Below, one piece after another: positions 16,896 through 47,865 of a stretch of DNA of 64,000 nt. The stretch is from Selaginella moellendorffii (Eukaryota > Plantae > Lycopodiophyta). The position numbers and the translations under genes were made by a program. The DNA lies in assembly GCF_000143415.4 (NCBI RefSeq), contig NW_003314271.1, positions 1,904,806 through 1,968,805 on the forward strand, read 5' to 3'. The notes beneath the pieces were generated by a model. It worked only from the letters and a program-made list of their open reading frames with translations. It was not told the DNA's origin and made no database searches. Positions within the stretch are counted from its first letter, which is position 1, and each line of letters begins with the position of its first letter.

Positions 16896-19439
16896 ATGTT
16901 GGCATCAATCAGAGAGCATCAAAGCATCATCGCATCCTTGCCCGTAGATTTCTCTTGCCGAAGAGCAGCATCACAGGGCTTGGCAATGGATCAAAGGGCC
17001 GCATCTCAATGCCTGGCAATGGATCGGCAATCGTGGGTATTCACCAAACAGGTAAATTGCTCTTGTGGAGGAGGAGGGAGAGCTACTGGATCGCTACCAT
17101 CACGCTTGCATTGGCTTCCATCGCCTAATAAGCTTCCCCCGATCGCTCGCTCCGTGCGGAGATTGCCAAGTCCTCTGGCGGCGGCGGCAGTAAATACCAA
17201 CGGTTCTTGCGCGGTTAGAGAGAACCACCGGGATTATGTGCATTGGTTCAGGGAAGCGTGGCCATACATCCAAGGCCATCGCGGCAGCACATTCGTGATC
17301 GTTGTCCCAGGCGAGATTTTGGCAAAGCGAGAGACTCTAGACAATATCTTGCAGGTTCTTGTGGTGATCTCAATTGTTCCTGGCTGATTTGCCTCGACTT
17401 TGCCAGGATGTTTCACTGCTCCATGGATTGGGAATCCAGATTGTGCTCGTTCCGGGGGTCCGCGTCCAAATCGACGATCTTCTCCGGGAGAGGGGTAAGG
17501 AGATTTGGATCTGCGAGAGGAGGGACTCTAGTTTTTCGAGCGGAAAAGAGAGGTTGGATTCCAGAGGAACGACACAAACAGCTAATAAATGCTTGTAGAT
17601 TGCAGGTAGAGAGCCGAGATATGTTGGAGCTTACAGGATAACTGATGCTCACGCTCTCGATGCTTCCATGGAGGCGGCTGGAAAATTGCGCGTCGAGATA
17701 GAGGCGAAGCTCTCACGGGGACCAAGCATCCCTGTTCTTCGTCGGCATGGCGAGAATGAAAGGTGGCACGAGTCCGGCTTGGGTGTTGCGAGTGGGAATT
17801 TTCTGTCAGCAAAGGTTCGTGAAGGCGTGATGAGAATCTGCGTAACGATCTGGGCTTGAACTGTGCAGCGAAGAGGCGTGGTCAATGGAGTGGACTTTGG
17901 AGCGACTGGAGAAGTGAAAAAGATTGATGCGGAACGCATCAAAGAGAGGCTCGACAAGAACTGCATCGTCCTGATGAGCAATCTTGGGTATTCTAGCACG
18001 GGAGAGGTTCTAAACTGCAAGTAAGCATCCATTGCCTTTGATCTTTGATCTTTCTTTCTTTTTCTTAAAACGCTTTTAGTACGTACGAGGTGGCGACGGC
18101 GTGCGCGGTGGCTCTTCAGGCTGACAAGCTTTTGTGCCTGCTCGACGGTCCGGTTCTTGACGAGAATGGATTCCTGATTCGCTTCATGACACTTCTTCGG
18201 GCCGACCAGCTGATAAGACAGCGCGCAAGCCAAAGTTACATCGCTGCCGATTACGTGAAGGCTCTGGCGGGGGCAAGCTACGCGAAAAGTCTCGGTCTAG
18301 CGGACGTTCCTTTCACGAATGAAAGGCGCGGTTTTTATGTGAGTGCGTCCACCGGCGACTTAGCACTCAGCGAAGAGAACTATGATTCCTGCGGGAAGGG
18401 GTTTGCTGTTGGTGGCTTGGTGCGGACACAAGGATACTTATCGGAGTTGACGGCCTCTGTTCACGTTTGTCGGGTAAGAACTTCGGAGCTTTCGAATATT
18501 TTTTTTTCTTTCGCGAAATTGAAGCTGTGCCGTGCTGGTCCTTAGGCAGGGGTAAGGCGGGTCCATCTCTTGGATGGTACCATTGAGGGAGCTCTTCTCC
18601 TTGAGCTTTACACCAGAGATGGAATAGGCACGATGATCGCAAGGTAAAGTCTCGTTGTTCATCAGTTTTAAATTGTTTGTGATGTTTGGATCTTTGACTG
18701 ATGATTTAATGCTCAATACAGTGATATGTACGAAGGCATTCGTTGTGCCACCAAGGACGATCTTCAGGANNNNNNNNNNNNNNNNNNNNNNNNNNNNNNN
18801 NNNNNNNNNNNNNNNNNNNNNNNNNNNNNNNNNNNNNNNNNNNNNNNNNNNNNNNNNNNNNNNNNNNNNCTCTCGATTCCGATGGCTCTCAATGAGATGT
18901 TCTCCGCAGTTACGAGGGGAGCTGGAGCATTATGTCGTCGTGGAAAGAGAAGGATCGTTAATTGCCTGCTGCGCACTGTATCCTTTCCTCAAAGACAAAT
19001 GCGCAGAAGTTGGAGCTTTCGCTGTTTCTCCCGAGTGTCGCGGCCACGGCCAAGGCGACAGCCTACTCGGTTCGTGCATGCATCTTTCTAGTTTATTGTT
19101 TCCTATGCGGAGCATAGAAACTAACCGGTTTCGCGATTGCAGATTATGTAGAGCAAAAGGCTGCTGCAATGGATTGCCAGTATCTCTTCCTCTTGACAAC
19201 TCGCGCCGCAGATTGGTAAACAACTCTCGTCGATCTTTACGATCTTTGGATAAAAAAGAAAAAAACGTTTTTGTTTATGTTTCTCCAGGTTCGTTAGCAG
19301 GGGATTTTTCCAGTGCCCCCTGGAGCAACTGCCGGCGGCGAGGCGGTCCGGAATAGACTTCACGAGAGGCTCCAAGTATTACATGAAGTCCTTGCAGCCG
19401 CGGCCGTGCAGCAGCGCACAGCTCGCCCTCCAGTTTTGA
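16896..19439 (+). CDS. NAGS: N-acetylglutamate synthase (amino-acid acetyltransferase), plastid type, multi-exon, spans an N gap
   Basis: [68 protein letters not shown], and GNAT domain [19 protein letters not shown]...RGSKYYMK. Confidence 0.95.
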
Positions 19440-20231: not shown

Positions 20232-22589
20232 ATGGCGCGGCTGGAGATCCGGGTCGCTGCCCTCGTGTTCTTGCTGGCGCTGTCGCGGTTCCGATGCGAC
20301 GAGGAGGAGATTTCGCGCAAGACTTACATTGTGAGGATGGACAAGGGAGCAATGCCGGCGATATTTCGGACGCACGAATCCTGGTATGAATCCACTCTCG
20401 CAGCAGCGTCGGGAATCCACGCCGCCGCCCCGGCGGCCGAATTCATCCACATCTACAACACGGCGATGCACGGATTCGCGGCCAAGATGAGCGCTCGCCA
20501 GGCGGCGGCGCTGGAATCCGCCCCGGGATTCATCCACATGTTTCCAGACTCCGCCAAGAAGCTCCACACGACGTATAGCCCACAGTTCTTGCATCTGGAG
20601 CAGTCCAACCACGCGCCATCGCTCCTCTGGAAGGATTCCACCTATGGCTCCGAGGCAATCGTGGGGATCTTCGACACTGGCGTGTGGCCGCAGAGCCAGA
20701 GCTTCGACGATCGCAAGATGTCGCCGGTTCCATCGCGGTGGAAGGGGACCTGCCAGGCCGGCCCGGGCTTCGATCCAAAGCTGTGCAACCGCAAGCTCAT
20801 CGGTGCGCGATTCTTCTACCGCGGCTACGAGGCGATGAGCGGTCCTATCAACGACACCACCGAATTTAAGTCGCCCAGGGACTCGGACGGCCACGGCACG
20901 CACACGGCCTCCACTGCCGCCGGGCGGGACGTGTACCGCGCGGACCTCCTCGGCTTTGCCGCCGGCACCGCTCGCGGCATGGCGCCCAAGGCACGCATCG
21001 CCGCCTACAAGGTCTGCTGGCAGTCGGGCTGCTTCGACTCGGACATCCTCGCGGCTTTCGACCGCGCTGTCTCGGACGGCGTGGACGTGATCTCTCTCTC
21101 GGTCGGCGGTGGAGTGATGCCTTACTACCTCGACAGCATTGCCATCGGCTCCTTCGCGGCCATGGAGCGGGGGATTTTCGTGGCTTGCTCGGGCGGGAAC
21201 GAAGGCCCGACTGATATGTCGGTGACCAACATCGCGCCTTGGATCACCACCGTCGGGGCCAGCACCATGGACCGGAGCTTCCCCGCGAATGTGAAGCTGG
21301 GCAATGGGATGGTGATACAGGGGGTGTCGCTCTACAGTGGGAAAGGACTCCCTCACCACCAGNNNNNNNNNNNNNNNNNNNNNNNNNNNNNNNNNNNNNN
21401 NNNNNNNNNNNNNNNNNNNNNNNNNNNNNNNNNNNNNNNNNNNNNNNNNNNNNNNNNNNNNNGAAAGATCGTGTTTTGCGAGCGCGGGAGCAATCCTCGC
21501 GTCGAGAAGGGATACAACGTCCTCCAGGCGGGCGGAGCCGGGATGATCCTCGCAAACGCGGTCGCGGATGGCGAAGGCCTCGTCGCGGACAGCCATCTTC
21601 TCCCGGCGACAGCAGTGGGAGCTCGGTCCGGGAGCGTGATCCGGAAGTACATGCACAGCACCAGGAATCCAACCGCGACGATAGAGTTCCTGGGGACAGT
21701 GTATGGCTCCGGCAACGCTCCGGTGATCGCGTCCTTCTCGTCGCGCGGTCCCAACCCGGAGACGCCCGAGATACTCAAGCCCGACTTGGTGGCTCCAGGC
21801 GTCAACATTCTGGCCTCGTGGACCGGCGACGCGGGGCCGACGGGGCTCTCGGCGGACACGAGACGCGTCAAGTTCAACATCCTGTCCGGGACTTCCATGG
21901 CCTGTCCTCACGTCAGTGGCCTCGCCGCGCTGCTCAAGTCGGCTCACCCGACTTGGAGCCCGGCCGCCATCCGGTCGGCGCTCATGACAACTTCTACAAT
22001 GGAAGGGAAGTCCGGGCACGTAATCGGCGACGAGGCCACGTCCAACTCTTCCACGCCATTCGACTTTGGATCCGGGCTCGTGGACCCCGTGAGCGCTCTC
22101 GACCCGGGCCTGGTGTACGACTTGTCGGTGCGGGACTACGAGAGGTTCCTGTGCGGGCTGAACTACTCGAGCAGGGCCCGGTCGACCGTCACCCGGAGTC
22201 ACTTCTCGTGTAGCAAGGACAGCACGACGAGGGACCGGCCCAGCAGCCTCAACTATCCATCCTTCTCGGTGGTGTTTGATCTGAGCCAGAAGGCTTACAC
22301 CACCACGGTGTCAAGGACTGTGACCAACGTTGGGCCGGCGAAGTCTTTGTATACTGCGAGGGTGGTGGCGCCGAGGGGAGTGGAGATCACTGTCAAGCCC
22401 AGCAAGCTCGAGTTCCAGAAGAGGAACCAGAAGATGGAGTTTCAGATGAGCATCACGGCCAAGTCGTCGCGGTCTGTGGCGGCGGGCGAGTCGGAGACGC
22501 AGTTCGGGGTGCTGATTTGGAGCAACACTCGCGGAGGACGACAGATGGTGCAGAGCCCGATCGCCATCAGCCGGCAGCAGCCATTTTGA
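20232..22589 (+). CDS. Subtilisin-like serine protease (S8, I9 prodomain, PA and Fn3 domains), secreted; contains an N gap
   Basis: Signal peptide; catalytic motifs DTGVWP, DGHGTHTASTAAG and SGTSMACPH; also FSSRGP, LKPD and LNYPSF. Confidence 0.97.
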   Translation: MARLEIRVAALVFLLALSRFRCDEEEISRKTYIVRMDKGAMPAIFRTHESWYESTLAAASGIHAAAPAAEFIHIYNTAMHGFAAKMSARQAAALESAPGFIHMFPDSAKKLHTTYSPQFLHLEQSNHAPSLLWKDSTYGSEAIVGIFDTGVWPQSQSFDDRKMSPVPSRWKGTCQAGPGFDPKLCNRKLIGARFFYRGYEAMSGPINDTTEFKSPRDSDGHGTHTASTAAGRDVYRADLLGFAAGTARGMAPKARIAAYKVCWQSGCFDSDILAAFDRAVSDGVDVISLSVGGGVMPYYLDSIAIGSFAAMERGIFVACSGGNEGPTDMSVTNIAPWITTVGASTMDRSFPANVKLGNGMVIQGVSLYSGKGLPHHQXXXXXXXXXXXXXXXXXXXXXXXXXXXXXXXXXXKIVFCERGSNPRVEKGYNVLQAGGAGMILANAVADGEGLVADSHLLPATAVGARSGSVIRKYMHSTRNPTATIEFLGTVYGSGNAPVIASFSSRGPNPETPEILKPDLVAPGVNILASWTGDAGPTGLSADTRRVKFNILSGTSMACPHVSGLAALLKSAHPTWSPAAIRSALMTTSTMEGKSGHVIGDEATSNSSTPFDFGSGLVDPVSALDPGLVYDLSVRDYERFLCGLNYSSRARSTVTRSHFSCSKDSTTRDRPSSLNYPSFSVVFDLSQKAYTTTVSRTVTNVGPAKSLYTARVVAPRGVEITVKPSKLEFQKRNQKMEFQMSITAKSSRSVAAGESETQFGVLIWSNTRGGRQMVQSPIAISRQQPF

Positions 22590-30513: not shown

Positions 30514-32114
30514 ATGATCGCGGGATTGAGCGCGGAGGAGGCGCGGGCCATCTCCAGGATAAATGTGGGCGCCTCCGCCTTCTCCTTCGCTGGATCCTTC
30601 TTCATCGTCGCGTGCTTCCTCCTCTTCAAGGAGCTTCGCAAGTTCTCATTCCGCCTCGTCTTCTACCTCTCGCTCTCTGTAAGTTCTTTGGATTCCATTC
30701 GAGCTCTTCATTCCAATCTCTCTTCTTTTTTGCCAGGATATGTTTTGCAGCTTCTTCAATCTCTTAGGGTAAGCTTTCTTCCAGCTTTCGATCGTCTCTA
30801 TCGTTTTTCCTTTTGTTTCTTCGATCACTCACAGTGGTGCAGTGATCCTGGAAGATGATTTCTTCCAACTTTCTATTGTTTCTATCGTTTTTTTCCTTTT
30901 GTTTCTTCGTGATCCTGGAAGACGATTTCTTCCAACTTTCTATCGTTTCTATCGTTTTTTTCCTTTTGTTTCTTCGCTTGTGGCTGGATTCACTCACAGT
31001 GGTGCAGTATGGCAGTGATCCTGGAAGACGAGGCTTCTTGTGCTACATGCAAGGCTACTGTACGCAGTTCTTCTCGGTGGCATCGTTTCTATGGACGACC
31101 GCCATCGCGTTTACGTTGCATCGAACTGTGGTGAGGCACAAAACAGATGTGGAAGAGCTCGGTCCAATCTTTCATCTTTACGTCTGGGGTATGCTCTTCC
31201 TCGCACAAAGTTTCATGGTTTTACACCACTTCTCCATGTTTTCCAGGAGCTTCTCTTATCATGACTGTTCTTCCATCTGTGGGAACTGACTATGGCGAAG
31301 TTGGAGCTTGGTGCTGGGTGCAGACCAAAGCCGGAGAGGTAATCTCTTTGCTTGGAGCTTCTCTATTGTGTGATCGATCCATTTTCTTTGTTCCAGGTCC
31401 TTCGGTTTATAAGTTTCTACGTTCCCTTGTGGGGGGCCATCTTGTTCAATGGTTTTATTTATTTCCAAGTTACTCGTATGCTCAACTATGCGAGCCGTGT
31501 AAGCAAGCAAGAGGGTCTCTTTTTTCCGCGATATGGAACTTCTTGCTTTTGCAGATGGCTGCTGGCATGTCGGATCGACAGCGCCAAGTGGAGATAAAAG
31601 CCGATCTTAAGGTATAACTCGCGTTGTCGCTGGTTTTAAACTTTGGTTTGATTTTTCTTCTCTTAGATTATGAACAGGCTGGGATACTATCCTCTGATTT
31701 TAATCGGTTCCTGGACGTGTGGGACAATGAATCGCATCCAAAGCTTCATTGCTCCACAGCGTCCAGTCTTCTGGCTGTGCTTGCTGGACGTAGGCACTGC
31801 CTCTCTCATGGTCCGTGCCTCTATCCAATCGCTACGAGAGTCCGTATAAAGAGTAGAGTTTCTTACATTATTCTTGTTCCAGGGCCTCTTCAATTCCATA
31901 GCCTACGNNNNNNNNNNNNNNNNNNNNNNNNNNNNNNNNNNNNNNNNNNNNNNNNNNNNNNNNNNNNNNNNNNNNNNNNNNNNNNNNNNNNNNNNNNNNN
32001 NNNNNNNTTTGACGCAGATACTGGCCAGAGCAGTACAGGTGGTCTAAGCTGCGAGGCTTTGCCGAAAGCGAAATGACTCCATTGAGCTCGTCTGACCCAG
32101 GGTCTCACCTGTAA
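30514..32114 (+). CDS. GCR1: G-protein-coupled receptor 1-like (cAMP-receptor-like 7TM), multi-exon, spans a gap
   Basis: FKELRKFSFRLVFYLSLS, CYMQGYCTQFFSVASFLWTTAIAFTLHRTVVRHKTDVEEL, FYVPLW, RLGYYPLILIGSW and GLFNSIAY. Confidence 0.93.
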
Positions 32115-35308: not shown

Positions 35309-36170
35309 TTATCGAAGAGCTTCTCGCATCACCATAGCCAGAGTCTTTGCGTTCCCAAGGACTGTGTCGAAGCTCTCGAGCAGTGTGGCGCTGGACGATG
35401 CGAGGACGAGCCTCTGGATGCGCTCCATCTTGTCGGGGCTCAAACTTAGCGTCAAGCTCATCGCCTCCGGAGCGTGAGCGGACTTTGCCTGGCTCACCGA
35501 GAGCTTGATCTCCGTCGTACCTGTGATGTCTTCCAGCTCCTCGAAGCTGGCTCCATCGTCTTCTTCTTGTTCGTAGCCTTCCTCTTCCTCCGAGTCTGGA
35601 ATCACGTCTGCTGTGCTGAAACCGATGCGGCGACGCTGCTGGTGCTGGTGCTGATGCTTACGCTTGCTTCCCCTCCGCTGCCTCTTGAAAATGTAAACTT
35701 TGAAAGCCAGAGACTTCGCGTTGTGGAGATGGAAGAGGCACACGTCCCCTCTCTCGAGGCCGTGAGAGGTGCTGAAAAGCTTCCAGCCGNNNNNNNNNNN
35801 NNNNNNNNNNNNNNNNNNNNNNNNNNNNNNNNNNNNNNNNNNNNNNNNNNNNNNNNNNNNNNNNNNNNNNNNNNNNNNNNNNNNNNNNNGTCCGGGCCGA
35901 GCCGGGTTTGACGCTCTTTTGCAGCGGTCATGGCCTCCAGAAATCCGGGAAGCTCTTCGACGCGTTTTCCCCATGGAACACAAGCAGTTAGTTGCTGCTG
36001 CTGCTTCGACTTTATCGGCGGTGGGAGACTGTAGTCAGAGTCGTTCTTTTCAATATCCGGTAATGGAAGATCTATCAAACAAAAGCACGGAGTCAGAGAA
36101 AAACTTATGGACCAATCTTGGCATACTCTGAGTCTGAGAACCAGATGAGCTGCTGATCTCCATCCAAACA
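35309..36170 (-). CDS. B3 DNA-binding domain protein (REM-like); start uncertain, N gap inside
   Basis: GWKLFSTSHGLERGDVCLFHL...FKVYIF is the C-terminal half of a B3 domain, followed by an acidic tract. Confidence 0.75.
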
Positions 36171-39835: not shown

Positions 39836-40228
39836 TCAAGACACTTCTTTTGGGGCTACTTCTTTTGGGGGATTTGCATCTCCCTTTGGAGGCTCCGGCC
39901 AGTACGAGGTCGCCTTTCCACTCTTTGACACCGCCTCTAGCACTTGTTCCGGCTTGAGGCTGCTCGTTGTCACCGAAACTTTTTGCTCCTTGAGATCAAT
40001 CTCGAATTTGTCCACTCCTGCGAAACCAACAGAGTCGATCTAGAAGCTTTCGAGCAGCAAAAATGGAGTAACAAACCTTCCAGCTTGCCAAGGACTCGCT
40101 TCACTGCACCAACACATCCCTGACAGGACATTGCCACTTTGAGCTCCACAATCTGGAATGAAAGCAAGAAAAAAAATTTCAACAATTGGGAAAGCAAAAG
40201 AAACCGAGCTAGTCCAAACCTCCGGCAT
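39836..40228 (-). CDS. Copper chaperone ATX1/CCH-like (HMA domain)
   Basis: MPE|[25 protein letters not shown]|[14 protein letters not shown]...[11 protein letters not shown]; contains the MxCxxC motif. Confidence 0.93.
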
Positions 40229-40350
40229 GTTGCTGATGAGTGAAGCTGCAATAAAATCGTTGGCCCTTTCACCTTCGATAATGTCACCTATTAAAGTACC
40301 TGAGTGTGGTCCACTCTACAGTTTCAAGAACTTTAACCAGAGTCCGATCT

Positions 40351-43300
40351 TTACAGCCATTGCGCGTTTACGTTTTCTTTCAGCTCACTGAAACAAATAC
40401 GAGTTATAGATTATACATAAGAACACAAAGCCATACCAGATACTCTTCAAGAATGGACTCGTTCCCGGCTCCTCGATCTTTGGAAAACATCCAGAAATCC
40501 ATAGACGCTCCCAGGTGGATAGGGGCTGAAGTATGTTTTTCACACTGCATGAACGCAATAGTCAAGTACTCTAGATACAAAAAGGCCTTACTACCTTGAT
40601 TCGGAAAGCCTCGAAAGTTCCTCAAGCAGACACTCCCTTGCTTCAACCGATACGTGTAGATTGATTAAGGCATCAACCTTGAGACGAGCGTCCATATCCA
40701 TGAGTCCTGCAAGGAAGGGAAAACAATATAAGTAGCTAAGAGAACGTTTAGCACAAGCTCACCAGCTTTAACCAGTCGCGCATCCTTTGTGCTGATGAGA
40801 CAGTCTTGTTGCTCCTTCGATAGAATTGATAGTTTCTCTCCGGTGCTGAGCTCAATATAAGCCATTGATAAGTCCCCATCTTTGGTCAAAAAGCCTGGAA
40901 GGAGAAACTGAACGATGTTTTCATATGAGACCATCTCCCTGGAAGATTCATTTTCGTTGGAGCCAATGAAACCCAGAAGTTTCACCATTGCCTCGACCAC
41001 GATATTTGGAATTTCCATATTATACACAGTACCATCCTCTCGTTTAGAAAATAGCTTCACCAAAGAACCACGAACATCATCCCATTTAGATAAAGGCTGT
41101 GTGCAGACTGTGTTGAAAGCATCCAAGAAAATTCCAAGATGGGAAAAGCATTCTCGCCATTCCAACCTGAAATAATTTCCTTTGCTGATGTCGACAGAAG
41201 GCTAGAGGCCAAAAGTTTCCTTGATACAAGCAAGCGCGCACTGANNNNNNNNNNNNNNNNNNNNNNNNNNNNNNNNNNNNNNNNNNNNNNNNNNNNNNNN
41301 NNNNNNNNNNNNNNNNNNNNNNNNNNNNNNNNNNNNNNNNNNNNNNNNNNNNNNNNNNNNNNNNNNNNNNNNNNNNNNNNNNNNNNNNNNNNNNNNNNNN
41401 NNNNNNNNNNNNNNNNNNNNNNNNNNNNNNNNNNNNNNNNNNNNNNNNNNNNNNNNNNNNNNNNNNNNNNNNNNNNNNNNNNNNNNNNNNNNNNNNNNNN
41501 NNNNNNNNNNNNNNNNNNNNNNNNNNNNNNNNNNNNNNNNNNNNNNNNNNNNNNNNNNNNNNNNNNNNNNNNNNNNNNNNNNNNNNNNNNNNNNNNNNNN
41601 NNNNNNNNNNNNNNNNNNNNNNNNNNNNNNNNNNNNNNNNNNNNNNNNNNNNNNNNNNNNNNNNNNNNNNNNNNNNNNNNNNNNNNNNNNNNNNNNNNNN
41701 NNNNNNNNNNNNNNNNNNNNNNNNNNNNNNNNNNNNNNNNNNNNNNNNNNNNNNNNNNNNNNNNNNNNNNNNNNNNNNNNNNNNNNNNNNNNNNNNNNNN
41801 NNNNNNNNNNNNNNNNNNNNNNNNNNNNNNNNNNNNNNNNNNNNNNNNNNNNNNNNNNNNNNNNNNNNNNNNNNNNNNNNNNNNNNNNCAGCTCGGACAT
41901 GAGAATTCCGAGATACCAATTTATCGGACAGGAACTTCATAACACTAACAGCGTCACCTTCGGAAGCTTTGTCCTCAGAAAACAGCTTTCTCAAGTTATG
42001 TAGAAAATCGTGTATAGGAGACTTGGCAGCTTGAAATATGAAGCGATAGAGGAGCTTGCGCTGCTTTCAAATTCTGATTATTAAAGTTTAGGAGCTGAAA
42101 ACGAAGTTACCTGCCAATCACAAGGCAGCATTCCCAGTACTTCTGGCTGTTTTCCCGCGACCTTCTGGATCCATTCCCAGGCTTCCTTGAAGTCCTGCTT
42201 TAAGGAAAATAGAAATGAAAACCAGCAGGTGATACCTATCATCTGTTGTACCTGCGAACTGACCGTATTACACAAAAAGCTTGGTTCCGTGCAGGAGCGG
42301 ATCCTTCTGCCCAAGTCATAAGATGGCTCGATATCTTTTAGCTCTTCCAAAATGTAAGTTGGAGGTTTTCTTCGATTGGTCTGGGTGTTTAAGAGCATGA
42401 TATTTCCTTTCCATGGTTCCATCACATTCGTGGGCTCGCATTCCAACTCTTTTATCAGAAAAGAGTCTAATATTTCCTCAGCCTTGATATCGTTTAGTAC
42501 AGCCTCTTTGTCTTCAAGGATATCTGCTGCCGACAAACTGCATCAAGCTCAAAAACATTAGAGTCACGTTAACATTCCATGAAAAACAAACCCCGACTTT
42601 GTGCCTTCTGTTATAAGGTACTGCAGAAGATATCTGACTGATGGGAAGTTCTCCCAAACGCTCTTACCAATAGTCGCTGGATTATAAGCAGCGATAACTA
42701 TAATAACTAGGCAAGACCTCCAGTACAAATCTTTTATCTGTCAAAAGTTTCTCAGGTCTTGCAAAACTCAAAGCAGCAATGCTTACGACAAGTTGCGGCA
42801 ATGGCTGCCGAGAGACACTTGGTAAGTAAAACGATGAAAGCTTCATAATCGCTGCAGGTAACTACAAACCAAAATTAGGCAGATAAATCACGATAAAAGC
42901 TTTGATATTCACCTGCAAGCTATCAGCAAACAGCGTCCCGAAGGCATGCTTATCCGAAGCGGCCGCCCGCCACACCAGCTTCTCAATTATGTGAAGAGCA
43001 TCTTCTTGCTGCATCGGGAACTGATTCTGTTTGTTCCTAAACTTCATTACAAGTCCCCAAAAACTCGAAAGAGAGAGAATACCGATATTCCCATCAAAAT
43101 TATTCGCGCAAGTACTTCCTCGGAAGCGTGCATGGAGAATGCAACAAGCTGGAAAGAGTTTAGCTCGACGGTACCACTCGACGATGATAAGTTATATTCC
43201 TGGTGGAAGCGTCAAAATTCGAAAAGCCAATGCACTACTGCCTACCTCAACAGGTTCTAAGAACATAAGCTTCTGTACAGCAGTAGTGAAAAACTTGCAA

Positions 43301-45624
43301 TCTCCAGCGCTTAGCTGTGAGCTAAGCACGTCAACACACCACGTTAACGCTTCCTCCTGAGAACACAAAATAGAAAAAGAGCTTTCAAGTAAGAGAGCTC
43401 TAGAGCTCTTACTTGAAAGGTCATAATCTTCATGCTGAGATCTTTAAAAAGAGGCAATATCTCCTTGAGAGATTCATCTCTAGATCGTTTTCCAGTCGCA
43501 GAAATGGCAACGAGAAATTTTTCATCGGAGGAAAAAGGAGTAGCCGCTTGAATCAGAAAATGGCATGATAGCTCTATCACCTTGTAGCAGCAACCAAGTA
43601 GTAGAGAATTAAAACAAAGGTTGATATCGTTTTGATAATATTCTTACCTGCTTGAACCATGACTGCCTGGCTGAATCCTGCTGCTGCAATATAGAATCCC
43701 AGGGTTCAAGTAGAGCCCGGCATAAGAGACAAGGGCTAATCTCTTTTAGTTGCTTCAAAACCCTGAAGTTTACACGAAACTGAACATGACGAAAACGTTG
43801 ATGAAAACGTACCTGGTCACGGCTTCCTGCAGCCGTCCTACATGATCGTCACTTAAAACCAATTCCTGCACAGCAGCACATTATTCGGAAGAGCATATCC
43901 TTTCTGATGTATTACCTTGATCACTAACGCCAAAGCTCTCTCCGGAGAAAGCGAATCCGGCAAAGCCTTTAAAACAACTGAAATGCCTTTCATATTATGG
44001 GGGCCCGTCGAATTCAGCTCCGCGGTAAGAAATGTCTGAGTATATAAGATTAGCTATCAAACACGCACTAGAAGCGAAGTACCTTTAATGCCAGAGACGA
44101 GTATTCTGGTCTTTTCTGAACTATCTGAATGACAAGCTCTGTATAAAACGAGGTCGACGCATTCTTCATCTGGGAACAGTGCCACGGTTAAGTACTTAGG
44201 CACCAACAAGTCACTAACCTGAGAAACGCCCTGATTCAATCGTAGAGATAAAATATTTGCAACCGTTTCAAAATCTTTCATTGTTGTGCCATTTGTAAAA
44301 TGTAGAACACGATCCAGCAGAAGTTTCGCGCGACGAAAATGGAAGGGAGTATTCAACCAGCCCTCCATCATGCTTGATGCAATGACCCGAACTTCTTCGT
44401 AGTTTACACCTAGTGTCAACATCCTGTAGAGCAGGACTTAGAGATAAACCTCGAAGGAAAAAAAATGTTGAAAACCTTAGAATACGGGGATTTTCTTTGA
44501 TCAATGGAACCTTTAAGAGATGATTGAGGGCTTGCATAAACTCAGCCTTAGCCTTCTGACGAATTTCGTCCCCAGGGTATCGGTTTTTAAGGCTACACTG
44601 CTACATAAAACAAAAAGCATTCCTAGACATGCTGTAAACTGGAAACCGAAGTACCTGAGCAGTATCGCCCTTGACATCTGATGGATCTTCCGTGCCCACT
44701 GTCAGGTCCTAAAAGCAAGAAGCACGTACAAATAAGATGTAAAACCATCGAGCATTACCTCATCAAATGACGTAAGTATGTTAGCGACAAACTCTTTGCA
44801 GTGCTCACTGTCCACCCAGTTACGCAAGTTGATCGCATCGTCTAAGTAGGCCTGCACTCAAACCCAAGCACGAGACCTTCTGTGAGACAAACAGCCACAG
44901 CGTACCTGCACAAATTCTAAAGGCCATTCGGGCTTTTCATTAAAAGCTCGAAACAAGAGCTTGCAAGAAAAACCAGGTAGAAAGTTTTGTTTCTTTGTAG
45001 AAGCCTCAGATGGACTTGAATCAAGGAAGGAAAGCAAAGCCTGGAAAATCCTTGAAAGTGAAAAACAGTCATATCCTTGAGGACGAACCTTGTATGTTCT
45101 TGGAAGACAGAAAGCGTTTGGCAGCTTTTTGGAAATGTAAAAGCAAGTAAGGTACTGATATCTCGGAGGCGAGGATGGAAATCTGCTGATTTCATCAAGC
45201 ACAGACTCCAGAATCTCGTCTAGCCGCTGCCAATTTTCCTGTGTCCACGCGCTCCAAATCGAATGTAGAATATCCAAATCTAAATGAGAGCGTCAAAGTG
45301 AGATGAGGAATCAAGCAAAGACAAAAAAGCACACCTTCGTCAATTCCCAAATCAGCTGCTGGCTCCAGATGCTGCTTGAAAATCTCGCGATGCAAAGCAT
45401 CCTCCTGGCCACTGCCAGCAATCCACTCCTGCCCCTCTTCTTCCGAAAATGGCGCATTGAGATCGAATCCTCGCGGAGTCGCATTCAAGTCGAGCGCCTG
45501 GGCTTGATCTTCCCTGGCTTTCGGCTTGCCGCGACCGTCCTCGTCGTCGTCGGGAGGATGCTGCCTCTGCAAGAACACAAGACGCTTCATCTCTCTGGGA
45601 ATCGAGAAAGAACGTTACCTTCAT
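40351..45624 (-). CDS. INTS1: Integrator complex subunit 1-like (multi-exon; N gap 41245-41888; 3' end approximate)
   Basis: EWPLEFVQ|AYLDDAINLRNWVDSEHCKEFVANILTSF resembles animal INTS1 WP..FVKVY.EDSLGER.WVDSP.C..FV.NI.TAF. Other INTS1-like blocks in order: NRY, EEVRVIASSMMEGWLNTP, IAAYNPATIG..VWENFP, and LEELK...YDLGRRIRSCTEPSFL. Recognised from memory. Confidence 0.8.
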
Positions 45625-46031
45625 CGTCTAGAACCCTAGAAAATGATAAACCCTAGAAATTTCCCGCCTGACGAAACGATCTAATAGCGATCACAGTGCT
45701 CTTTCCACCAGCTACATTGTATAGGCCCCAATCACACAAGATGAGAATGTATAGCAACAATATTTCCAAAAAATATCAAGAAAATGACCGTACGGAAGGT
45801 TTGGGCCGAATGACCGTTTGTGGTCCTGCTAATCTGGGCCCTCCGTATATCCCATGTCTCACACTCACACTCAAGTAGAGCTAGGCTTGGTTAGTTTCTT
45901 TCTTGTTTTCACGCCTGGGGCGGCGGCGGCCGGGCGGCGGTGGCGGCAGCGCGTGTGGCCATCGGCAAGCAGCTGGATCGATCGCGGCGGCCTTGTAGCT
46001 CGATCGTCTCGGCAAATCGATCGATGCAGTG

Positions 46032-47865
46032 ATGTGTCGTGTCCAGGTCGTGTATTATCTCAGCCATGGGGGACGGATGGAGCAGCCGCATCTCATCGAG
46101 GTGGAGCAAGAGGGAAATCGTCTCTACCTGAGCGGTATTTTCAATGGGATCGATCGTCGATATCTTGGACTTGCTGAGATAATTTCGTGTTGCAGAGGTG
46201 AAGAAGCGATTGACGGTGCTGCGAGGGAAAGGCATGCCGGATGCCTTCTCCTGGGCCTACAAAAGGTTCGCTGTGTTCTTTCTTCTCCCCTTTTTATGTG
46301 GTTCCTCGCGTGATTTTCTCTTGCCAGGAGCTACAAGAACGATTTCATCTGGAACGACGTGACAGAGAATGACCTGATCTTACCGCTTCGCGACAATGAG
46401 TATATCATCAAAGGATCGGAGAATGTGTATGGAAGACAAGGTCAGTTTGGTTCTTTGGATGATCTTTCATTCGTTTCGTCCTTCCAGAGAGTCGTAGCGA
46501 TCGGGGAAGAGTTCCAAGCATCCAGGAGGAACACAAGGATTTCGAGAGTCCAATGTCTTATCATCACCACACTCCCATGCGAGCAAGCGAAGGCTATGAC
46601 AAGCGGAGCTCATTGTCTTCTTCTTCCGTCGCTGGCAGCAGATCGCCCAGGAACAGGAACAAAGCTTTCAACTGCGAAGGCGCTCTCAGAGTGAACAGGC
46701 AGCTCATGGAGACGCTCACGCAGGCAAAGACCGAATCCATGGACGAAGTCTTCTACGATAACCCACACTCGGATGGATCAAGCAACGGCAACACTTTCAC
46801 TGACGTCAAAGTGTACAAGACTCCGGCATCTCCTGTGACTGCGGACCACGGCAAGGATGCAGCAACGCAGACGGAGGAGCATTCTGGTAAAAATACTCAC
46901 GAGTTCCAGTTTCACCGAGATGTTCAGCACGATCAGGAGAGAAGCTGTCAACGTGATCAGGAAACTCAAAGCTCCAGGAAGAAGTCTGAGAGAGCTGGTT
47001 TGGTTTCTACCGTAAGGAAGCAACTGGAGGAGAGTAGCCGGAAGCAAACAAGCACTGCGGTTCTTCGGCAGCTGCTCTCCTGTGGTGGGATCGATACGAA
47101 CACTTGTTCCTCCATGCAGTACAACAGGTTGCACTATCCACCGCAAGCATGGGCTTGGAGCAAGTCCAAAGCAGATACCAGGTCCGAAGCGGAGAGTGCT
47201 TCCAAGATTCCACACGATGTTCTTCCTTCTTGGGAGTCTCCTAGGATGCCAGCTCGTTTGGTCAGCTCGAGTCAGGATCCTGAATCTATTCCAGAAGTTG
47301 TGAAGGAAACGACGAACTCCCCGGCTGCAAGCCATGCGGAGCGACGATCCTTGGTAGACAAGGCATCTCGCGAGGAGGCAAGAAAGTTACAGAACAGTAT
47401 GCTTATTGCAACTAAGGAAGCTCGGAAGGTCGAAGACAACAGCCCCCGTCTATCGCCTGCGATAAAACGTGTTAATGTGGAACTTCCAACGCTAAAGGTG
47501 CAGTTCAGCCCCCCGAAAAAGGAAATGAAGTGCAAGGAAGACAGGTAGGACTCCGTTAGTTCGCAAAGTTTCAAACTCCTCTAGCTTTTTCGTTGCAGGC
47601 CTCTAACACCAGGACGAAGCCGACTCGATTGGGAAAAGACCCTCCAAGAGGCTGTCAATGCAAGTTCTCCTCCCGTGGATTTCAGATTGTTGCTGCAAGA
47701 ATGCCCGTAAGTTTCTGCCCGGAGCCGCTTACACTTACTCGGAAGTCTTCTTGTTCTAGGCAATGTGGTCGAACTTTCAAGCCAGATTCTCTGAAGGTTC
47801 ACTTGCGAGGATGTCATGGCCAGAAAACTGGGAAGATAACAAGCGTGGCAAGGCGTCTTGAATAG
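46032..47865 (+). CDS. SOK: SOSEKI polarity protein (DUF966: DIX-like domain, CG motif, C-terminal zinc finger)
   Basis: VQVVYYLSHGGRMEQPHLIEV...DVKKRLTVLRGKGMPDAFSWAYK|RSYKNDFIWND...EYIIKGSE, DAATQT, LRQLLSCGG and C..CGRTFKPDSLKVHLRGC. Confidence 0.93.

Follow-up and report, generated by a model that had tools for sequence, protein, structure and literature searches.

A probable INTS1 orthologue in Selaginella moellendorffii that ends shortly after the INTS2-binding domain

Gene structure and expression

Within the analysed window, a stretch of 64,000 nucleotides (64 kb) of Selaginella moellendorffii DNA, the minus strand carries a gene of 25 exons whose coding sequence (CDS) runs from an ATG at 45624-45622 to a TAA stop at 40353-40351, exactly the limits given in the initial annotation (40351-45624), and encodes 1,223 aa once an assembly gap is filled. 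The mRNA (~4.1 kb) starts near 45671 and its 3' UTR extends below 40351. The introns are very short (46-67 nt) and all 24 are GT-AG, the intron at 40762-40707 being counted as such after a one-place shift permitted by the contig alignment.

The coding part of exon 1 (45619-45624; ATG AAG, encoding MK) was placed by protein mapping and by the start of exon 2 at 45566 in the contigs, and the MKR(Q/H) start is kept in liverwort and clubmoss orthologues. Exon 2 (45335-45566; contig piece 45335-45566 and protein mapping) encodes an acidic N-terminus and the motif LDLNATPRGFDLNAP (45494-45447), and is followed by exon 3 (45089-45279; contig piece 45088-45279 and protein mapping). Exons 4 (44906-45040, ending ...EWPLEFVQ), 5 (44759-44851, with AYLDDAINLRNWVDSEHCKEFVANILTSFDE, also matched in the PDB), 6 (44655-44708) and 7 (44476-44600) were placed by protein mapping, and their total of 407 nt equals contig positions 478-884. 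Exon 8 (44219-44423; contig piece and protein mapping), with EEVRVIASSMMEGWL, encodes the core of the RPB2-binding domain, and exon 9 (44083-44169) is fixed by the contig joints 44169/44219 and 44035/44083.

Contigs and protein mapping together define exons 10 (43916-44035), 11 (43813-43865), 12 (43648-43762), 13 (43413-43580), 14 (43246-43356), 15 (43083-43199), 16 (42913-43026), 17 (42787-42861), 18 (42592-42737, with AAYNPATIG), 19 (42252-42537, a contig piece with LKDIEPSYDLGRRIRSCTEPSFL) and 20 (42111-42194), which in RefSeq isoform X1 begins 3 nt earlier through an alternative acceptor at 42197. Before the gap, exon 21 is represented by 41890-42060 (contigs and other haplotype), with 186 nt more inside the gap. 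After it, the remaining part of exon 22 (40763-41244), which encodes much of the INTS2-binding domain, exons 23 (40595-40706) and 24 (40437-40544) and the coding part of exon 25 (40351-40387), with CELKENVNAQWL and then the TAA stop, were defined by contigs and translation.

The gene is real: it is transcribed and spliced, and its frame is open. About 55% of the sampled words, roughly the exonic share, are contained in 19 runs from 11 studies, one transcript contig of 4,146 nt spans the whole CDS, and contigs from four runs of four studies carry GT-AG joints and a frame open to the TAA (1,223 codons). The RNA status of the runs is a tool's guess, yet RNA is the sole possible origin of the spliced form.

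Assembly gap and frameshifts

The content of the assembly gap (41245-41889, 644 N) was recovered from transcripts and the other haplotype. Transcript contigs from four runs of four studies bridge 41244 and 41890 with 244 letters between them, and the other haplotype, which is contiguous here (L006, 7544-7839), has 296 bp in which a GT-AG intron of 52 nt separates exon parts of 186 and 58 nt; the 644-N run overstates the real distance of ~296 bp. The gap content encodes 82 residues (CGRKCISG...STSSLAYL). Since the CDS before the gap fills 896 codons exactly (2688 nt) and the 244 letters add 81 codons and one base, the frame is continuous onto 41244.

At the A-run at 41127-41131 the window has four A (41128-41131) against five in the four runs and the other haplotype, a deficit that shifts the frame 117 nt past the gap and, as written, leads to a stop 21 codons later. 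Because the extra base occurs in four independent runs and in the other haplotype, the frameshift is best read as an assembly error, with a true defective allele as a slim residual option. A cluster of five transversions at 41021-41071 is seen neither in any transcript nor in the other haplotype, which points to low quality in this gap-adjacent stretch. The other haplotype, a handful of substitutions apart, is without one base at the equivalent of 43522 (exon 13), leaving its gene model in two pieces. The breakage consists of a gap and a homopolymer error in one haplotype and of a homopolymer error in the other. The present model is complete for a locus that is broken in both public haplotype assemblies.

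Identity of the encoded protein

The exons of the window account in full for the RefSeq protein of the locus (P0013; 849/849 residues mapped). Searched against all PDB chains, P0013 matched INTS1 as the sole family (E 2.3e-54), with residues 83-836 colinear with human INTS1 122-906 (7cun_A) in two blocks, 83-219 with 122-259 and 267-836 with 340-906. The densest match, residues 83-219 (44759-45271, minus strand), reaches 62 bits (domain i-E 2.5e-16). The 3' part of the protein, taken from the other haplotype (P0014), matches human INTS1 582-918 (E 3.1e-25). All four INTS1-like blocks first picked out of this multi-exon gene are present, in the human order, in the spliced minus-strand product: the first, EWPLEFVQ followed by AYLDDAINLRNWVDSEHCKEFVANI, is interrupted by the intron at 44905-44852, and the others are EEVRVIASSMMEGWL, AAYNPATIG and LKDIEPSYDLGRRIRSCTEPSFL. 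The N-terminus, with an LDLNATPxGFDLNAP motif, is plant-specific and replaces the animal N-terminal region.

The Pfam domain INTS1_RP2B-bd (PF12432, formerly DUF3677) scores 41.9 bits against a cut-off of 25 over profile positions 27-149 of 156 and covers residues 276-403 (43955-44486, minus strand), exon 8 alone giving 22.9 bits. INTS1_INTS2-bd (PF22929) scores 47.1 bits against a cut-off of 27.2 over profile positions 2-307 of 335, measured on P0014, an other-haplotype allele whose DNA is >99% identical to the window, and corresponds to residues ~879-1180 across the gap (40532-41943, minus strand). No single window exon gave a significant match to this gap-spanning domain on its own; the call depends on the joined protein. 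The AlphaFold model of the 703-aa 3' part (P0014), outside which the N-terminal 520 residues lie, has a pLDDT of 69.5 and a pTM of 0.52. Its best six Foldseek matches are all INTS1 chains (E 1.2e-17 to 1.4e-7; 8rbz_a with an rmsd of 5.4 Å over 384 columns) and the best non-INTS1 match, to generic ARM/HEAT folds, has E 2.9e-4; the 3' part is predicted to have an INTS1-like fold.

An unrelated HEAT/ARM-repeat protein, INTS1-like by repeat composition alone, would accord with the weak INTS1 matches of single exons searched alone and with a language-model look-alike search that put Mediator subunit 23 ahead of INTS1. This candidate is refuted by the PDB search, in which the spliced protein matches INTS1 alone and is colinear with it over ~750 residues, by the two INTS1-specific Pfam domains above their cut-offs and by the Foldseek ranking, which places INTS1 chains ahead of other helical-repeat folds by more than three orders of magnitude in E-value; its remaining probability is practically nil. 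With PDB match, Pfam domains and fold in agreement, the homology to INTS1 proposed in the initial annotation stands, and the locus (45624-40351, minus strand) is very probably an expressed, single-copy S. moellendorffii orthologue of INTS1 (Integrator subunit 1), which serves as a scaffold in the machinery for RNA polymerase II termination. This identity is ordinary and already known, the RefSeq models being named "integrator complex subunit 1(-like)", and the evolutionary pattern is of modest interest.

A short form of INTS1

At 1,223 aa the product is, as had been suspected, far below the ~2,190 aa of its animal counterpart and ends ~40 residues past the INTS2-binding domain, with the reading frame stopping at 40351 in all transcript contigs. 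With an E-value limit of 0.01, neither P0013 nor P0014 matched R3 (PF22927) or R4 (PF22928). Both are present, by Pfam, in Riccia, Marchantia, Ceratodon, Taxus, Cryptomeria and fish, and all comparators extend ~560-1,100 residues past the Selaginella end, which falls at about residue 1,473-1,500 of Marchantia polymorpha INTS1 (2,551 aa; RefSeq 'integrator complex subunit 1'). Selaginella INTS1 is a truncated, not a canonical, member of the family, without the C-terminal 40% that holds the R3 and R4 repeats. In animals the C-terminal repeats are highly conserved and hold the majority of human disease variants (PMC11381918); their absence may therefore leave the protein with an altered or only partial function.

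A decaying pseudogene, truncated, frameshifted and non-functional, would likewise be without the C-terminal 40% and could show a frameshift in the window as written and another in the other haplotype assembly. Such a relic is highly improbable, given transcripts from four studies with an intact frame of 1,223 codons and neither frameshift, GT-AG borders in 24/24 introns, both Pfam domains above threshold, haplotypes that differ by few substitutions and a Selaginella branch length of 1.06 against 0.99 in Diphasiastrum and 1.32 in Taxus, i.e. no longer.

Gene fission, by which the C-terminal half would be encoded by its own gene at another Selaginella locus and the complex would keep R3/R4, is suggested by a break at a domain boundary, directly after the INTS2-binding domain, and by the clubmoss Diphasiastrum, in which ~560 additional residues align with the C-terminal part of liverwort INTS1. 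It is nonetheless quite unlikely: nothing resembling the C-terminal half lies within the 64-kb window, both haplotypes have a gene for an HMA copper chaperone as the downstream neighbour, and no R3/R4-bearing Selaginella protein is among those retrieved, genome coverage being that of the window. If the repeats are instead truly lost, the half that binds RPB2 and INTS2 would be the part that one lineage found enough to retain.

Distribution of INTS1 in land plants

Identity between Selaginella and other plant INTS1 is 35-41% over ~900-1,270 aligned positions (31-41% over the shared part when all the non-flowering orthologues compared below are included) and 22-24% with animal INTS1, and the tree places plant INTS1 in one clade (support 100/100) with Selaginella within it. 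By sequence comparison, the family appears to be ancestral in land plants, occurring in liverworts, mosses, lycophytes and gymnosperms, and the ancestral land plant INTS1 had all four animal-type domains.

INTS1 orthologues throughout the angiosperms, which would count against the initial annotation, did not emerge: none was found in exhaustive and word-based database searches that returned liverwort, moss, lycophyte, gymnosperm and animal INTS1. The query of the exhaustive search was one weakly conserved exon, which reached Taxus at E 3.2e-4 and missed most mosses (Ceratodon-type), one word-based search did not return Riccia INTS1, a recognised family member of 2,446 aa, and gave only three animal INTS1, and the length filters of the word-based searches left out proteins below ~640 aa. 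The result fits a loss of INTS1 in flowering plants, with searches too insensitive for proof.

Angiosperms may instead carry a diverged or shortened INTS1 that was overlooked, so that the gene would be universal in land plants and the flowering-plant loss wrong. The failure to return Riccia and Ceratodon-type mosses, the return of three animal INTS1 out of presumably thousands, the length filters and the mention of 'Arabidopsis INTS1' in the text of a conifer study speak for this, whereas none was found although angiosperms are the best-sampled plants in databases, the table of the same conifer study lists the Cryptomeria INTS1 gene with no homologue in Arabidopsis, and the Arabidopsis complex is described with INTS3/4/7/9/11-like parts only (PMC10533338). 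According to Liu et al. 2016, plants lack INT1 (PMC5079582), which agrees with the earlier statement that the DSP1 complex was described without INTS1. An overlooked angiosperm gene is on balance unlikely.

The proposal that this lineage keeps an animal-like Integrator which flowering plants reduced holds in part: no angiosperm orthologue was found, but Selaginella INTS1 is itself reduced and, because it is without the R3/R4 region, 'more animal-like' suits bryophytes and gymnosperms better. Given the non-flowering orthologues, the statement 'missing in plants' (PMC5079582) holds at most for flowering plants.

Proposed role

The Selaginella protein is colinear with about the first 1,300 residues of animal INTS1, which span the HEAT 'tail' at the N-terminus, the domain that binds RPB2, helical repeats in the middle and the domain that binds INTS2. 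By comparison with human INTAC-Pol II structures, the N-terminal arch may contact RNA polymerase II at the external domains of RPB2, and the INTS2-binding domain may anchor the protein to INTS2 in the backbone, the mechanistic roles of these retained parts having been described for INTS1 (PMC10501182, PMC12228764). By homology, the protein would link the polymerase to an Integrator-type cleavage complex for snRNA 3'-end formation and premature termination, and we infer its Integrator membership and its role in snRNA 3'-end formation and termination from this analogy.

Selaginella may then hold a 'half INTS1' that keeps the RPB2 and INTS2 contacts and has shed R3/R4, the whole gene having been lost on the angiosperm stem, a joint reading offered tentatively and at slightly under an even chance. 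It would date the angiosperm loss after the split from gymnosperms, with a DSP1-type minimal complex left. If true, it would provide a graded natural series (full, half, none) in which to ask what INTS1 and its C-terminus do. The role of plant INTS1 is testable in tractable bryophytes, e.g. Marchantia and Physcomitrium.

Comparison with known systems

Human and other animal INTS1 (PDB 7CUN, 7PKS, 7YCX and 8RBX, chain A/a) are colinear with the Selaginella protein over human residues 122 to ~1,320, with RPB2-binding and then INTS2-binding Pfam domains in the same order and, as modelled, the same helical-repeat fold. They differ in length (2,190 against 1,223 aa), in having R3, R4 and the rest past the INTS2-binding domain, which Selaginella is without, and in the N-terminus, which in Selaginella is plant-specific; identity is just 22-24%. 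INTS1 of other non-flowering plants (Marchantia polymorpha, Riccia, Calypogeia, Ceratodon, Diphasiastrum, Taxus, Cryptomeria and Ginkgo) are orthologues in one clade with Selaginella that share the N-terminal motif and the RPB2-binding and INTS2-binding domains, but are 1,722-2,596 aa long and have R3 and R4 in most cases.

The Arabidopsis DSP1 complex, made up of DSP1 (INTS7-like), DSP2 (INTS3-like), DSP3 (INTS4-like), DSP4 (INTS9-like) and CPSF73-I, is the Integrator-related plant machinery for snRNA 3'-end cleavage (PMC5079582; PMC10533338), and machinery of this type is presumably the setting in which the Selaginella protein works. No INTS1-type scaffold figures in the description of the Arabidopsis complex, whereas Selaginella, bryophytes and gymnosperms encode one.

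Identification of the INTS1 gene

The gene at 45624..40351 on the minus strand had been assigned to Integrator subunit 1 (INTS1) in the initial annotation from four INTS1-like blocks, all of which are present in the stated order in a three-frame layout of minus strand 40351-45624, and the span given for it is exact, with the ATG (45624-45622) at its end and a TAA stop (40353-40351) at its start. Single exons gave weak INTS1 matches against Pfam and PDB, and their matches to PB2, Bcl-xL and Fab were dismissed as chance; the spliced protein was required for identification. The spliced RefSeq protein encoded in the window (P0013, 849 aa) matched INTS1 alone in PDB (E 2.3e-54), its residues 83-219 corresponding to human INTS1 122-259 and 267-836 to human 340-906, and the 703-aa 3' part annotated on the other haplotype (P0014) matched human 582-918 (E 3.1e-25). 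Both INTS1_RP2B-bd (41.9 bits; cut-off 25) and INTS1_INTS2-bd (47.1 bits; cut-off 27.2) were detected by Pfam. A profile of plant segments and one clam sequence aligned to human 568-1319 in one stretch, with a score inflated by the animal row.

The 3' part of 703 aa was modelled with AlphaFold (pLDDT 69.5) from an alignment that left out parts of P0033, P0036 and P0039; the six best Foldseek matches of the model were all INTS1 chains, and the E-values of generic ARM/HEAT folds were higher by over three orders of magnitude. The ESM Atlas look-alike search, which placed Mediator 23 higher than INTS1, was uninformative, also on angiosperms. Plant INTS1 sequences formed a single clade (support 100/100) that includes Selaginella, and the gene is a vertically inherited INTS1 orthologue. 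PDB, Pfam, fold and tree thus bear out the earlier identification, which is already public: the window product is named 'integrator complex subunit 1-like isoform X1-X4' (XP_024529259-62, Selaginella moellendorffii), the other-haplotype fragments are named 'integrator complex subunit 1 homolog' and 'isoform X1-4', and a Marchantia protein is named 'integrator complex subunit 1'. New here are a gene model that is complete across the assembly gap, the pair of homopolymer errors by which both public models are broken, the recognition that the Selaginella protein is shortened and stops after its INTS2-binding domain, and an initial indication, from non-exhaustive searches, that the family occurs across non-flowering land plants and not in angiosperms.

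Gene model, gap and assembly errors

When P0013 was threaded onto the window, 849 of 849 residues matched in 20 exons separated by GT-AG introns of 46-67 nt. Transcript evidence came from Logan contigs of four runs (four studies) placed on 40250-45700, including a 4,146-nt contig, with counterparts in other runs, that spans the whole gene in spliced form. The RNA status of these runs is the tool's guess, but the intron-less joined form can only derive from RNA; the contigs give neither expression level nor transcript ends. A splice model from length-maximising DP was wrong, with several out-of-frame stretches, and was superseded by the RNA joints and the exact mapping of the RefSeq protein. 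Tandem alternative acceptors lie 3 nt apart at 42194-42197 (minus strand): splicing at 42197 yields QQDFKEAW, as in RefSeq isoform X1, and splicing at 42194 yields QDFKEAW, as seen in the transcript contigs.

The XP_024529259-62 models end prematurely at a run of N inside the gene. This gap (41244|41890) is bridged by contigs with 244 letters absent from the window. Ahead of it, 2,688 nt of coding sequence fill exactly 896 codons; the bridging letters add 81 codons and one further base, and this base completes a codon with 41244-41243. The other-haplotype locus of the same assembly (L006, GL377594.1, reached via P0014) is contiguous at this point, with 296 bp in which a GT-AG intron of 52 nt separates exon parts of 186 nt and 58 nt; on this haplotype the gap content encodes 82 residues, CGRKCISG...STSSLAYL. 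The contig bridge, the codon count and L006 together show that the two sides of the gap are continuous and in frame, and the real distance is shorter than the 644 N written. With this content inserted, the gene model comprises 25 exons and a protein of 1,223 aa. Four further gaps of exactly 100 N each occur elsewhere in the window (18770-18869, 21363-21462, 31908-32007 and 35790-35889).

As written, the window is frameshifted 117 nt past the gap: it has four A at 41128-41131, and five A in every one of the four runs as well as in the other haplotype put the window one base short in this coding-exon A-run (41127-41131). Five clustered transversions (41021-41071, within 50 bp and beside the gap) also differ from all transcripts and the other haplotype, and the stretch 41021-41149 is read as low-quality assembly. 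A separate 1-nt deletion affects the other-haplotype assembly at L006 5913 (window 43522 in equivalent coordinates) and accounts for the split of its RefSeq model into a 495-aa and a 703-aa protein. The two public haplotype assemblies each lose one nucleotide from a homopolymer in a coding exon, at different sites, and neither deletion is in the transcripts; these errors, with the transversion cluster and the gap, explain why RefSeq INTS1 models are fragmentary only (847-849, 495 and 700-703 aa).

A short form of INTS1 in Selaginella

Selaginella INTS1 is a short form that ends past the INTS2-binding domain. In fish INTS1, the numbering of which is close to human, the RPB2-binding domain occupies residues 321-476, the INTS2-binding domain 968-1301, and the two C-terminal repeats R3 and R4 residues 1840-1996 and 2053-2154. 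The Selaginella protein aligns to animal INTS1 120-1240, Riccia 173-1437 and Taxus 466-1634, and ends there; neither R3 nor R4 was detected in it by Pfam scan. Both repeats are present in Riccia, Marchantia, Ceratodon, Taxus and Cryptomeria, a few matches lying slightly under the Pfam cut-off. The truncation is specific to Selaginella among the sequences compared, because INTS1 of the clubmoss Diphasiastrum (1,722 aa) retains about 560 residues more, which align to the liverwort C-terminal region. The C-terminal half could possibly be encoded by a separate gene elsewhere in the Selaginella genome, but no sequence resembling it occurs elsewhere in the 64-kb window, and the next downstream gene in both haplotypes is an HMA copper chaperone. 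In the short form itself, the N-terminus begins with MKR(Q/H), a start common to the Selaginella, liverwort and clubmoss orthologues.

Close to this start lies the motif LDLNATPRGFDLNAP (45447-45494, minus strand), which combines an EAR-like repressor motif of the DLNxxP type with a second DLN after it. An almost identical sequence stands at the INTS1 N-terminus of three liverworts (Marchantia, Riccia and Calypogeia), of Diphasiastrum and of a moss transcript (P0034), and the motif is missing from the aligned region of fish INTS1. This conservation among the land plants compared, together with its absence from the fish region, marks it as a conserved, plant-specific feature of INTS1 rather than a chance motif.

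Distribution of INTS1 in land plants

INT1 and INT11 have been stated to be missing in plants (Liu et al. 2016, PMC5079582), and the Arabidopsis complex has been described as a smaller Integrator with INTS7/3/4/9/11-like parts (2023 review, PMC10533338). An exhaustive phmmer search with one Selaginella exon, which is weakly conserved (Taxus was matched only at E 3.2e-4), found INTS1 in Selaginella, Ginkgo, Diphasiastrum, Riccia, Sphagnum and Taxus. Word searches found it in Taxus and Cryptomeria with full-length Taxus INTS1; in Calypogeia, Marchantia, a moss transcript, Ceratodon, Cryptomeria, one fish and two clam proteins with Taxus residues 466-1000; and in Ceratodon, Cryptomeria and two unnamed transcripts with a 10-sequence profile. 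No angiosperm INTS1 was retrieved by the phmmer search with the Selaginella exon or by the word searches with Taxus INTS1 and the 10-sequence profile. The word searches gave few matches and missed known members (the one with Taxus 466-1000 failed to pick up Riccia and almost all animal INTS1), so the lack of angiosperm matches in them carries little weight.

The conifer INTS1 gene SUGI_0492850 is described in the text of a Cryptomeria study (PMC13339982) as 'homologous to Arabidopsis INTS1'. No Arabidopsis homologue is listed for it in the supplementary table of that study, so the phrase is unfit as evidence for an Arabidopsis INTS1. Two papers considered as candidate reports of angiosperm INTS1 were set aside, as subunit 11 was meant instead, and no mention of 'DUF3677' was found in the literature searched. 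Angiosperms quite probably have no recognisable INTS1. The pattern of retrieval fits a loss of the gene in flowering plants, though searches that missed known members or started from a weak query exon do not decide it.

Neighbouring genes

A divergent upstream gene (~45850-47550, plus strand) encodes a SOSEKI (SOK, DIX-like domain) polarity protein, with a Pfam SOK match of 26.9 bits on its first exon and a 518-aa SOK protein annotated on the other haplotype. Its coding start lies ~400 bp from the INTS1 ATG, and one short bidirectional promoter probably serves both genes. Downstream, the HMA/ATX1-type copper chaperone gene (39836-40290, minus strand) lies on the same strand as INTS1 and starts ~200 bp past its stop. 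The 4,146-nt contigs extend from INTS1 beyond 40250 into this gene, which is no proof of a single transcript; the continuity reflects either overlapping UTRs or read-through.

Proposed role and comparison with animal INTS1

When human INTAC sits on paused Pol II, INTS1 reaches the RPB2 external domains with a 'tail' made by its N-terminal HEAT arch (PMC10501182), and INTS1, INTS2 and INTS7 form the backbone (PMC12228764). By homology, the N-terminal arch of Selaginella INTS1 would contact the RPB2 external domains of Pol II, and the protein would sit in the Integrator backbone through its INTS2 contact region. The C-terminal repeats show high conservation among animals, are the site of most pathogenic variants in humans and have no known partner (PMC11381918). 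Selaginella INTS1 differs from its animal counterparts in retaining exactly the RPB2- and INTS2-contact regions of the human protein without the animal-conserved C-terminal repeats.
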